DNA of 64,000 bases. Source: Guillardia theta CCMP2712. Its lineage: Eukaryota; Protista; Cryptophyta. This document shows positions 31,862 to 37,008 of this stretch, piece by piece. The notes under the pieces were generated by a model. The model worked only from the letters and a program-made list of their open reading frames with translations. It did no database searches and was not told the DNA's origin. The DNA lies in the NCBI RefSeq assembly GCF_000315625.1, contig NW_005434617.1, forward strand, positions 241,757-305,756. Direction: 5' to 3'. How positions within the stretch are numbered: the stretch's first letter is position 1; every line of letters begins with the position of its first letter. The translations under genes were made by a program, and so were the position numbers.

Positions 31862-34800
31862 ATGTCCAATGACAGGCCAGGCTCGGGCTTTCTGCCTACT
31901 TTCAACTTGAACCCGATGCTTGCCCTTCCTACCAACGCGATCCCCACAAAGCGAGGCGGTGCTGTAGGAGGCCATGACGGGAACGACATTGGATCCATGT
32001 TGCCGGCTGCAAGCATCTCACACTCGATGATGAGCTTGCAGCACGGGAACCTGGCGAATGCAGGGCTGCACAGCAACATGGCGTCGCTCGGCCTCCAGCA
32101 GGCTGCCCTGCAGAACGCCAGCCTGTCGATGATGGGGAACGCGAACGGCATGTTTGGTGGAGGAGACTTGCTGAGCAAGCTGCAGTCGACTATGGGCTTC
32201 CCAACTGCGGCGAGAGACGCCATGCTCACGAACGCTGGAGTCGTGAGCTGGGGCATGCCGGGGTTTTCTCTTCAGGGTCAAGACCTGCGGGGCGGGGGAG
32301 GTATGAGCTTGGCAGGGGCAGCAGGGCTGGCAAGTGCAGCCAATGAGCAGATGCTGCAGCGACTGAACCTTCAGAGCATCATGCTACAGAACTTGGGACA
32401 CATGGATCGGGCAGGCGTGCCCTTGCAGCCCGAACTGGGGACGGGGAGACTGCATGCTCAAGAGATGCTGCAGTCTAACGGGTCCTCTTACCAGGATGAG
32501 ATCTTGGAGATGTCACAGCCGAGAGAGGAAGAAGAACTTGTGGCAAGGGCTCAGATGGGAGTGGTGGACCAAGATCACGCAGAGGCCGAAGAAGCGAGCT
32601 ATGAAGCCGAGGTTGGGTCTCTGATCCCGATCCGTCTCCTCTGACCCTGCCTTGCAGGCGGAATTCCAGCAATCGTCCCCATCATCCAAGAAGAGAAAGA
32701 AATCAGAAAAGAGCCAGAAGGTGAAAGAAGAGGAAGACTTGGATATGCCAGACGCAGAGGTGCAGGAGGAGGAGGAGGCGCACGAGCATGCCGGGAAGTC
32801 CTCCTCGCACAAGTCTGCGAAAGAGTCCAAGAAGTCAGGATGCGCTGGGAGTGGTGGTGGGATCGTGCTGGGAAGGGGTCCACGAAATGACTTCCACTCG
32901 GCTCTGGAGACTCTGATTGGATCAAGGATTTACGTGCACGGGACAGGAGGGGCGAAAGGGGTGAGGAAGGACGGGATCCTCTGTAAGGTAGGAGACGCGG
33001 TGCGGGTGGAGAGCGAGGGGACCGTGATGGGGCTGAATGACTTCTGCGCCTCGGCACAGAACTCGAAGAAGCGACCGAGGGACTGTGTCCGCCTCGCTGA
33101 CTCTGGGATGAGCCTGAAGCAGGCGACTGAGTCGATGATTGGAGTGCTGCCGCCGGCGGCACCCAAGAAGGCTGAGGGTCAGCGAGGGAACGGGAAGTCA
33201 GGAGACGCTGCGAACTTGGCCGAGGACCGGGAGGACGAGTCGTCCGATGACAACAGCAGCGTCAAGAGCGACGACGAGAAGGAGCCGAGTCATCCCGAGG
33301 TGGAGGAGAAAGCAGCAGCGGTCGTGAAGAAGAAAGAGAGCAAGCTAGTCATCAGCAAGTGCCCCGAGCTGCTGGCCAGCTCGCACCTGTATAAGTCGGA
33401 GGAGGAGGTCGGGCACGAGTATGACCGGGCTAAGGTCGACTTCACTCTAGTCCTCCCCTGCGCCAGCAACAAGGGCAACCAGTCGGCGGCGCAGGAGAAG
33501 CATGTGCTCGACATGAAGCTGTGCCTGAACATGCTGAAGATGATCATGAACCACAAGTTTGGCCCGCTGTTCTGCGAGCCCTTCCGCACTGCTCAGGAGT
33601 CTGACGTCAAGAAGAGAGTCTCGCAGCCCATCGACCTCATCAGGATCAAGGAGAACCTCGAGGAAGGGAGGTACCAAGACCCCTCCGAGTTCAGCGCACA
33701 CGTCCGGCTCATCTTTCATAATGCAAAACTCCTCTACCCTCAGGGATCTGCCATGCTAGGTTCCTCCTCCTCCTCCTCCTCCTCCTCCTCCTCCTCCTCC
33801 TCCGTTTCTTATCCTTCTTCTCCTGTTTCTTGTCCTGCTTCTCCCCTTCTTTCTGCTTTCTTTCCTTTTACCCCTCCTTTTTCCTCATCTTCCGTTACCA
33901 CCAATTTGACTTCTATGTCTTGTCCCTGACCGCTTCTGCAGACTGTGCAGATTCTGTTTCCCAGCTCTTCGAGTCGAAGTTCGATTCGATCGAGTCGCAT
34001 GCTGTCAAGGAGAACGCTGAGACCTTTAAGAAGTTGCCTGCCGAGCTCAAGGATGTGCCGCAGAGATTTCTAGACTGGTCGACTCCCTCCCTCCCTCCCT
34101 CCCTCCCTCCCTCGTTCTCTGCCTGCCTGCCTGCCTGCCTCTCTGCACTCAGTCTCCCTGCCTGCATCCCTTCTGACGTCTCCCCCTTCCCCTGTGTCCC
34201 TTCTTCTCTTCTTTCTATGATCGCTTCCTTCTCATGCTCTCTTGCAGCTGGTTCATCATGGACAGCAACGGCGAGTTCCTTGCGCCATGGCACGCCGGCG
34301 ACGCGTCACAGCCCGGCGGAGTCTTCGGCCTCCTGCTGGCGGCAGGGCCAGGGAAGGGAGAGGGAGGGGAAGGCGACTCGGACTCGCTGGAGATTCGGCT
34401 GGAGGCCCCGGACGAGTGGCACGTGCAGTGCTTGGACATGACGGGCTGCAAACTCCCTCAGTTCTGGATCCGCGGAGACTCTCATGCCGGGCCCGTGTGG
34501 TACCAGCTGGGAAGCCCGCTGGAGATGTACAGGTGGGAGACGGGGAGGGAGAGGAGAAGAGATGGAGGGATGGGGGGTCAGGAGGGGAGGGGAAGAGGAG
34601 AGGGAGGGAGAGGCAAGGGAAGGAAGTGAATGGAATGGGCAGGCCTTTTCTGAGGAGGGAATGCACTTGGTTGATGGCGAGCTACCGGATCTGCTCGTTC
34701 CTGCAATCGTGCCCGAAGGCCTCGTACGAGGAGGTGAATCCTTTTCCTCCACCCCCCTGCTGCCTGGCCTCTCCGGCGCTCCTCTCCCTCTTTCCGCCCC

Positions 34801-35505
34801 CTTTCCTTGTCTTCTCCTTTTTGTCCTACTGCTGCCCCTTCTCTCTCCCCCTCTCCCCCTTTCTCCCTCCTCCTCGTTTTCCTTTCCTACCTCATGATTT
34901 CTCCTCCACAACCCCCGTCTTGCTCGCTCTCACATCCCATTCTCCCGGTTCTGTCCTGTCCTCAAGTGTCAACAGGTGTGCGAGGTGCTAGCAGGGAAGA
35001 ACTGGAAGTCAGGAGGGAAGAAGTTGAGGCCTCTTGTCATGGTTTCCTCCTCCTCCGTTTCCTTCCTCTCCCTCAAAACTTCTGCAGGACCTTGTCTTGG
35101 ATAGAGCAGACAAGATTGTTGAGGTAGGCCTCCTCCTTCCACTAACATCATCCACCACCACCACCAGCCTCCTCCTCCTCCTCCCCCTTCCCCCTCCTCA
35201 CACTAGCACTCTTCTGCTCCTGCTCTGCTGCCTTGGTCCTCATCCTCTTGCATTCCTTACTCACCTGTTCTCCTTCGCCTCTTCCTGTCAACCCTCTCGC
35301 ATCTCGCTCCCCTCACTCTCATTTGCAGGAAGTAGCGTTGCTCAACCCCAAGCTCACATCGCACAGATTCCTACTGACTCTGCTAGCACGGCAAAGCAAG
35401 GTAACTAAGTTCCTGATGCAGTCCTTTCTTCTCCTTATCATTCTCCTCCTCACCTCTCCTCCTCCCCCCTTCCCTTTCTCCTTCTTGTCTCAGTCCTCGT
35501 CTTGA
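31862..35505 (+). CDS. Chromatin reader: low-complexity N-terminus, SAND/TDBD-like domain, atypical bromodomain, DNMT1-RFTS-like domain (multi-exon)
   Basis: Introns 32612-32657, 33760-33941, 34078-34247 and later ones splice in frame. Bromo: CLNMLKMIMNHKFGPLFCEP...QPIDLIRIKENLEEGRYQDPSEFSAHVRLIFHNAK. RFTS-like: VPQRFLDCWFIMDSNGE...IRLEAPDEWHV...PQFWIR...WYQLGSPLEMYRPF...ICSFLQSCPKASYEE. Confidence 0.8.
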
Positions 35506-36102
35506 CCCTCCTTCCCCCTCCTCCTGCTCCTTCCTCCTCCTCTTGCTCCTCCGTCCTCCTCCTCCTTCCTCCTCTTCGCACTTCTTCCTCAAACTTCAAG
35601 TGAGTACTGAAGGACCTCCAGTATCTCCGTCGCAAGTTCATTCGCACCAGCACCTGGGGAGGGCAGGAGAGAGGGGCCGAGCATGGTGAGACGTCTAGTC
35701 TTGTCGCTACTCGTCTCATCCTCTCCTATCAGACTCTCAGGAGCACTGACTGACATTGGCCTTGTACCTTTACATTTGCATATATCCTCTTCCCCTCCCT
35801 CCTCCCTCTCGTCCTCGTCCTCGCTCCTCTCTGCTTCGAATCTTGTCCCATCCGCCTTTGTCTTCCTTCCCTCACTTAGTTTCTTGATTGAGCTTCTTTT
35901 TCTTCTTCTGCTCATTTTGATCTCATTTAACATGTCGATAGCAAATCTTTGACTTTGTTACATTCGCCTCAACCCCAAAACATACTATACACTCCTCCTC
36001 CTCCCTCCACCGCCACTACTACTACCGCTAACCAGCAGCTCTTACCACCACCACCACCTCCTCCTCCTCCTCCTCCTCCTCCTCCTTTCTTCCGTCTTCC
36101 CT

Positions 36103-36534
36103 TCACACATGAAAGACTGGCTGCACTCTCTTGACCGGCTGCTGACAAATGTCGCACTTCTTGACTCCCTTAGCACATTTGCGGCACCTGCAGCCCGTAA
36201 GACTTGAGGGGAGGAGGACGAGGAGAAGTAGTCTAGAAGAGAATGGGTAGAGGCAGGGGCAGGGGCAGGGGCAGGGGCAGGGGCAGGGGCAGAGGCAACT
36301 TACAAAAGCAGGGGCAGGGGCAAGGGCAAGGGCAGGGGCAACTTACAAGATTCGATGACCGCAAGGGACGAGGACGGTTTCGATGGCTCTACGGGCACAT
36401 TTCTACAAAACGATCAATGGAGGAGGAGCGTGAGGAGGAGGGGCAAGAATAGGGGAAGGGACGGTCGTGAGAGGAGGGAAAGGAGAGGGAAGGAGAGGAG
36501 AGTGAGAAAGATCAGAGAAGAGGGAACGAGATGA

Positions 36535-36572
<38 letters not shown>

Positions 36573-37008
36573 TAGGAGGAGGAGGAGGAGGAGGAGGAGG
36601 AGGACCTTGCAGCAGAAGTAGTCAAGCTTCACATCCACCTTCTCTTCACTTGGATCCTCTGGATCCTGAAAGTTCCGTCAGCCTCCCCATCCAGCCTGCA
36701 GCACTCCTTACCACAGTAGCTCCCCTCCTTCCACCAGCCTCCTCGTCCTCCTTCCCCTCCCTATCTGTCTCCTCCCTCTCCTCCTCTTCCTTTCCCTCTT
36801 CCTTCTCCTGCTGTTTCTCCAAGAGCTCTTGCTCTTTCTTGCCCTCCACGTCTTCCGACCCGCCTGCCTTTTCCCCGCCCTTAGCTGCTGCCTCTCGTTC
36901 CACCTCCTGCGGTCGCTCCCTCTCGCTCTCGGTCGAGTCTTGATCCTCCGCACCCGCGGACAGCTGCGAGGAGATGAGAGAAGCAGGAGAAGGAGCAGGA
37001 GCAGGAGA

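Follow-up and report, generated by a model that had tools for sequence, protein, structure and literature searches.

The window analysed here is a 64,000-nucleotide stretch of contig NW_005434617.1 of the cryptophyte Guillardia theta CCMP2712 (C57:241757-305756; the assembly searched comprises 87.1 Mb in 669 contigs), and all positions below are counted from its first letter unless a contig is named. It contains a gene on the + strand that runs from 31862 to at least 35685 and encodes a protein of at least about 867 codons. The product is a non-catalytic protein with a low-complexity N-terminus, a SAND-like domain, an acidic linker, a degenerate bromodomain and a predicted complete, two-lobed RFTS domain, the regulatory domain of the DNA methyltransferase DNMT1. 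Here we describe the gene model, the evidence for each domain and the function that we consider most likely.

The gene was modelled by reading the three + strand frames, after which the junctions were checked by script. Nine exons were recognised, the ninth tentatively, separated by eight introns of 46-242 nt that all have GT-AG borders and consistent phases throughout. Exon 1 (31862..32611) starts at the first ATG of its open frame, encodes a Gly/Met/Asn/Gln-rich low-complexity N-terminus that is 62% identical to residues 1-240 of a transcript-derived protein of Hanusia phi (P0001), and ends at a GT donor at 32612; a further exon may lie upstream. Exon 2 (32658..33759) follows an AG acceptor after a 46-nt intron, is 76% identical to P0001, and encodes a basic/acidic linker, the SAND-like domain (32880..33161), an acidic linker and helices Z, A and B of the bromodomain (33522..33759). 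It is collinear with two further relatives, P0002 (tblastn E 4e-30) and P0006. Exon 3 (33942..34077), joined by a codon recreated at a phase-1 junction, supplies bromodomain helix C and a linker ending in PQRFLD, and is collinear with residues 315-358 of P0002 (tblastn).

The remaining exons encode the RFTS. Exon 4 (34248..34532) carries the beta-barrel lobe (WFIMD...WYQLGSPLEMY) and is recovered by tblastn with P0002 (E 1e-23), P0006 (E 2e-21) and P0013 (47% identity), scoring 142.8 bits against the family profile. Exon 5 (34643..34733; PFLRRECTWLMASYR...) encodes the helix joining both lobes and is likewise recovered with P0013 (51% identity), P0002 (E 2e-7) and the family profile (48.9 bits). 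The helical lobe is divided over three exons. Exon 6 (34976..35041; VCEVLAGKNW..., GT-AG, phase 0) is collinear with residues 515-548 of P0002 and 654-670 of P0006; exon 7 (35088..35123; DLVLDRADKIVE) sits without gaps opposite LEAVLEHAERVLE of P0002, between the neighbouring exons; and exon 8 (35329..35400), which begins EVALLNPKLTSHRFLLTL... and reads EVALLNPKLTSHRF...ARQSK, matches residues 547-586 of P0002 (tblastn). In the fragment P0025 an intron follows ARHHK at a position identical to the end of exon 8. The tentative exon 9 (35622..35685) opens at a phase-0 AG acceptor with YLRRKFIR, which corresponds to YLHRKARG in P0002 and YVRRKARG in P0025, each directly after the ARHHK equivalent. 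The introns are markedly CT-rich and of low complexity, with TCC, CTCC and CCTG repeats at 33760-33900, 34080-34150, 34740-34900 and 35130-35230, and a GA/GGA-rich repeat tract lies 3' of the gene (36240-36640).

A preliminary description of this DNA, made from the sequence alone, had placed the protein at 32880-35400. All the peptides it quoted were found on the + strand, with GSRIYV...SGMSL and the bromodomain in the open frame 32652-33929. The gene itself is longer at both ends: its start was moved upstream to about 31862 because P0001 spans both upstream exons (1 and 2), and the stop that had been reported after FLLTL is absent, the frame running on through ...LLARQSK to the GT donor at 35401 and then into the further exon from 35622.

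The C-terminal exons could have belonged to another transcript, and the relatives argue otherwise. A word search with the long exon gave two relatives, P0001 and P0002. P0001, which is 77% identical, spans exons 1-2. It keeps the intron after the bromodomain exon (opposite window position 33760, the same position as in Guillardia) and ends within the translated intron; the public Hanusia model is therefore truncated, and its RFTS hidden. P0002 is a cryptophyte orthologue of 660 residues, encoded in a single uninterrupted frame on a 31.9-kb marine metagenome contig (L003:10001-11983), and its tblastn matches in the window are collinear with exons 2, 3, 4, 5, 6 and 8. P0006 (910 residues), also intronless, is likewise collinear with the exons, and P0013 runs across the exon 4/5 junction (E 3e-29). 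The conserved motif PQR-x-L-x-x-W-x-I-D runs across the exon 3/4 boundary and is interrupted by the intron 34078-34247, so that the exon with the bromodomain and the one that opens the RFTS must lie on one transcript. We therefore read the locus as one expressed-type nuclear gene, and the refutation that the preliminary description had set for itself, C-terminal exons on another transcript, fails.

The family is small and evolves fast. Of the 1.84 billion representatives covered by a HMMER scan with P0002, no more than 36 came out as relatives; most are fragments, and there is no DNMT among them. The source-given names of all family members are 'hypothetical proteins'. Wherever the source of a member is established it is a cryptophyte, namely Guillardia, Hanusia or the L003 contig. 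P0002 is 53-57% identical to the Guillardia protein in the core exons; the identity between these two cryptophytes is 40%, compared with 83% for their 2-oxoglutarate dehydrogenase (OGDH), the neighbour of P0002 on the compact and intron-poor L003 contig. P0006 and P0066, both from one Joint Genome Institute sample, are 33-38% identical and add GATA-like and C2H2 fingers after the RFTS (residues about 800-900).

The RFTS was assessed in the relatives, in a family profile and in a predicted structure, as the domain is split over six exons in the window gene. Against the Pfam family PF12047 (DNMT1-RFD; gathering score 22 bits), four relatives score above the cut-off (P0013, 32.3 bits; P0015, 26.9; P0009, 23.1; P0016, 22.8) and P0006 falls just short of it at 21.6 bits. 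P0002 alone remains under the cut-off (15.6 bits, E 0.11), its C-terminal domain gave no phmmer match to PDB sequences, and the ESM Atlas gave no usable match. A first family alignment (A1), which included the bromodomain tails, was swamped by BRD2/4 matches and was replaced by a profile of the C-terminal domain (A2). Against all PDB sequences, A2 matched only four chains, all of them Arabidopsis MET1, over 111 columns (E 0.067) that take in the WYRLG-P motif. Against its own genome it found, besides itself, only C62:315013-315384 (E 1.1e-4), a locus that is also RFD-positive in the Pfam scan of the genome (39.8 bits); hhalign of A2 with the C62 open frame gave a probability of 93.7% and an E-value of 1.8e-7. 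The only other PF12047 match in the genome, a weak one on C15, is a WD40 protein that gave 0.04% probability in hhalign with A2; it is no RFTS and was used as a negative control.

An AlphaFold2 model of P0002 residues 335-600 (pLDDT 75.8, pTM 0.68) has the two-lobed fold, in which a helical bundle comes after the beta-barrel. The top 18 Foldseek matches of the model are all RFTS-containing DNMT1, MET1 or DIM2 structures, the best with E 3.6e-7, and are followed by a gap to E 0.5. Alignment with VIA-align matched residues 13-257 of the model to DNMT1 400-595 across both lobes (Z 11.0, root-mean-square deviation 3.6 A over 164 residues); the top 16 VIA matches are all RFTS domains of DNMT1, MET1 or DIM2 (Z 8.4-11.0), and the next, unrelated, has Z 4.2. 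As modelled, the C-terminal domain of P0002 is a true RFTS with both lobes complete. The same assignment for the window protein follows from the 47-57% identity of exons 4-5 to the relatives tested, and we call its domain a predicted RFTS on that basis. The domain had been named RFTS-like from the letters of the window. Single exons are blank in Pfam; the name holds through the relatives, the profile and the fold, which all point to RFTS.

Upstream of the RFTS, the bromodomain is well recognised by Pfam PF00439 (61.5 bits, E 7.5e-17, model positions 1-79 of 84) and is atypical, as had been proposed. In the alignment to the bromodomains PHIP(2) and PBRM1, the acetyl-lysine Asn position of the BC loop, where PHIP(2) has an atypical Thr, is taken by Tyr; Hanusia also has Tyr there, and P0006 has His. 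In our reading, with BRD4 as the pattern, Val replaces the Tyr of the ZA loop, so that neither of the canonical acetyl-lysine contacts (BC-loop Asn, ZA-loop Tyr) is present. In P0002 most of the ZA region is gone, and Pfam no longer detects a bromodomain. Judged from these residues, the family appears to be dropping acetyl-lysine reading.

The SAND-like domain at 32880-33161 is the best-conserved region of the family (22 sequences). The window domain scores 19.8 bits against Pfam TDBD (PF16135; E 8e-4), below the cut-off of 23.6; none of the other members among the 22 matches TDBD, and none of the 22 matches Pfam SAND (PF01342) at E up to 1. A conserved basic loop, NSKKRPR, stands at the position of the SAND KDWK motif. 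In a Foldseek search with an AlphaFold2 model of the domain (pLDDT 87.5), the SAND structures 1ufn, 8j70, 1oqj and 1h5p rank 1, 4, 5 and 8 (probability 0.85-0.97, E 0.04-0.2). A VIA scan, in which Z below 8 was treated as non-decisive, gave the CcrM C-terminal domain 7.3, MPND 7.0, SAND 6.9, the GMEB1 SAND 6.4 and Ski/SnoN 4.3; Ski and SnoN were themselves described earlier as SAND-like. For MPND a literature search turned up no description as a SAND protein, and its match is given here with no family name. The label SAND-like, also chosen in the preliminary description, is thus a fair one at the level of the modelled fold, short of family membership, and a role of the basic loop in DNA binding is one that we infer.

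The genome holds two RFTS genes, both with a bromodomain and in opposite order. The second is a single 750-codon open frame on C62 (L001:1126-3375 = C62:314650-316899) with a DNMT1-RFD at residues 126-254 (36 bits) and a C-terminal bromodomain at 656-727 (56 bits). Like the window gene it joins RFTS and bromodomain and has no methyltransferase, and its RFTS is the nearest relative in the genome; unlike the window gene, it has the RFTS at the N-terminus and the bromodomain at the C-terminus, and no SAND-like domain.

No C5-methyltransferase domain was found in the window gene or in its full-length relatives P0002, P0006 and P0066; P0002 stops after 660 residues, beside a convergent gene. PF00145, the C5-methyltransferase family, matches only C24:340592 and C30:75066 and nothing on C57, which bears out the earlier statement that the protein has no methyltransferase. 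In the same six-frame Pfam scan of the genome no RFTS was found at either C5-methyltransferase locus, and PF12047 matched only on C62 and weakly on C15. No SRA domain of the UHRF1 type was found either, although such an absence is no proof. The canonical DNMT1-UHRF1 pair seems to be absent from this genome. The literature on the Guillardia DNMT repertoire yielded nothing useful. On C24, a fungal-type Zn(2)-Cys(6) cluster domain (E 9.8e-9; L008:5252-5716) lies about 850 bp upstream of the C5 DNA-methylase exon (46 bits; L008:6563-6895) on the same strand, and the two may form one gene with an unusual pairing.

The family RFTS also lacks part of the DNMT1 domain. In DNMT1 the loop 386-404 lies between two ubiquitins and is needed to hold both; residues E397 and Y399 are required for ubiquitin binding, which is abolished by Y399G or I442G (PMC5887372). 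The structural alignments with the P0002 model begin at DNMT1 400-405, past the zinc motif and this loop, and neither the zinc motif nor the ubiquitin-recognition loop (human 351-404) has a counterpart here. The linker between the bromodomain and the first RFTS strand is only about 25 residues long, and P0002 has D and A at the positions that we align with the later Cys/His zinc ligands of DNMT1.

Among known systems, the RFTS domains of DNMT1, MET1 and DIM-2 have the same two-lobed fold as the family domain, and MET1 also has its W-Y-x-L-G-x-P motif. The window protein differs from them in having no methyltransferase, BAH or CXXC domain and in carrying its RFTS at the C-terminus, after the bromodomain. 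An RFTS without methyltransferase has been described in Schizosaccharomyces pombe Raf2, a CLRC subunit with a C2H2-type finger whose RFTS binds Cul4; proteins of this type have been called fungus-specific (PMC4121317). Compared by description only, Raf2 resembles the family in these respects (distant P0006 and P0066 have a C2H2 finger as well) and differs from the window protein in its N-terminal RFTS and in having no SAND-like domain or bromodomain. DNMT1-RFD proteins without methyltransferase are also reported from apicomplexans (Plasmodium falciparum PF14_0463 and Toxoplasma gondii S8GFS8; PMC4046975, PMC8839046); these, again compared by description only, are reported to have other partners (an Auxin_resp-like domain), with no bromodomain or SAND-like domain reported.

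The animal proteins SP100, SP140 and AIRE are nuclear proteins that combine a SAND domain and an atypical bromodomain, much as the window protein combines its SAND-like domain and bromodomain, and the SAND structures of SP140 and Sp100b are among the top Foldseek matches of the window domain. They differ from it in the PHD finger between the two domains, in the KDWK motif (a KKRPR loop in its place here) and in having no RFTS; no HSR/CARD was detected in the window protein, nor a Pfam SAND match. The resemblance to SP100/SP140 is most likely convergence. Neither the literature nor the source-given names that we searched yielded the combination of SAND-like domain, bromodomain and RFTS. The preliminary description did not recognise the architecture: as a whole it indeed appears to be undescribed, while an RFTS without methyltransferase is known from Raf2 and the apicomplexans.

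We favour the reading that the protein is a chromatin adaptor that uses its RFTS as a docking module, with a probability of roughly 0.6. As an adaptor, it would contact DNA or nucleosomes with the SAND-like domain through the basic loop, and the RFTS would dock a partner protein or a histone tail, by analogy with Raf2 (Cul4) and DNMT1. The bromodomain would probably be a structural element or one that binds something other than acetyl-lysine. With neither zinc motif nor ubiquitin loop, and in a genome whose search gave no SRA of the UHRF1 type, the RFTS would not read doubly ubiquitylated H3 in the manner of DNMT1. Several points weigh against this reading. The functional statements are all ours to infer, exons 3-9 are predicted in this species, and Pfam gave no DNMT1-RFD match with any window exon taken singly. 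The RFTS model is of the orthologue P0002 and not of the Guillardia protein itself, and the SAND assignment combines middling fold scores (Z about 7, Foldseek E 0.04-0.2) with a sub-threshold TDBD score and no Pfam SAND match.

The preliminary description had suggested a stand-alone multi-reader, whose bromodomain would read acetyl-lysine and whose RFTS would read ubiquitylated or methylated H3, and which would recruit or regulate DNA methylation in trans. The RFTS fold is indeed DNMT1-like with two lobes present, the family conserves the E-W motif of the barrel, and at least two C5-methyltransferase loci are available in the genome for the protein to serve in trans. Against this stand Tyr for the acetyl-lysine Asn and, in our reading, Val for the ZA-loop Tyr, the lack of a detectable bromodomain in the orthologue P0002, and a structural match that starts at DNMT1 400, beyond both the zinc motif and loop 386-404, which is needed to hold two ubiquitins (PMC5887372). 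A DNMT1-style link to methylation is unsupported because the RFTS starts past that motif and loop, no SRA was found and the bromodomain has the Tyr; nor does any locus join an RFTS to a methyltransferase. We consider this proposal improbable.

A Raf2-like role, in which the RFTS docks a cullin-4-type ubiquitin ligase or an H3K9 methyltransferase complex and the protein is a heterochromatin assembly factor targeted by the SAND-like domain, has a precedent in Raf2 itself, an RFTS protein without methyltransferase that binds Cul4 and has a C2H2-type finger (PMC4121317). Distant P0006 and P0066, in which GATA-like and C2H2 fingers follow the RFTS, speak for it as well, and the finding of no zinc finger downstream within the window speaks against it; we think such a role unlikely in this specific form. 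That the C-terminal exons are not RFTS at all or form a separate gene with a chance resemblance, as the blank results with single exons in Pfam and with phmmer against PDB and the P0002 Pfam E-value of 0.11 might suggest, is already largely refuted by the four relatives above the Pfam cut-off, the RFTS-exclusive fold matches, the hhalign probability of 93.7%, the conserved motif split by the exon 3/4 intron and the single open frame of the orthologues, and we give it hardly any weight.

There is also a wider reading, which we put forward tentatively and consider rather doubtful as it stands: in cryptophytes the RFTS may be an autonomous chromatin-targeting module, wholly apart from DNA methyltransferases. 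Two genes, each with its own independent arrangement, pair an RFTS with a bromodomain, and the search of the genome gave neither a DNMT1-type enzyme nor an SRA of the UHRF1 type. If true, this would amount to a pathway that does not depend on methylation and may be coupled to replication or related to heterochromatin, and it would imply that the RFTS was a reader in its own right earlier than, or alongside, its capture by DNMT1. To our knowledge, the RFTS has been studied almost only as a regulatory domain of DNMT1, and the sole characterised free-standing case is that of Raf2 in fission yeast. The combination described here is new and all its component parts are known, so that the surprise is moderate. 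A small, fast-evolving cryptophyte family and a second gene, neither with a methyltransferase, widen the range of settings in which the RFTS occurs, and would offer a natural system in which to ask what this domain binds when it neither autoinhibits nor targets DNMT1.

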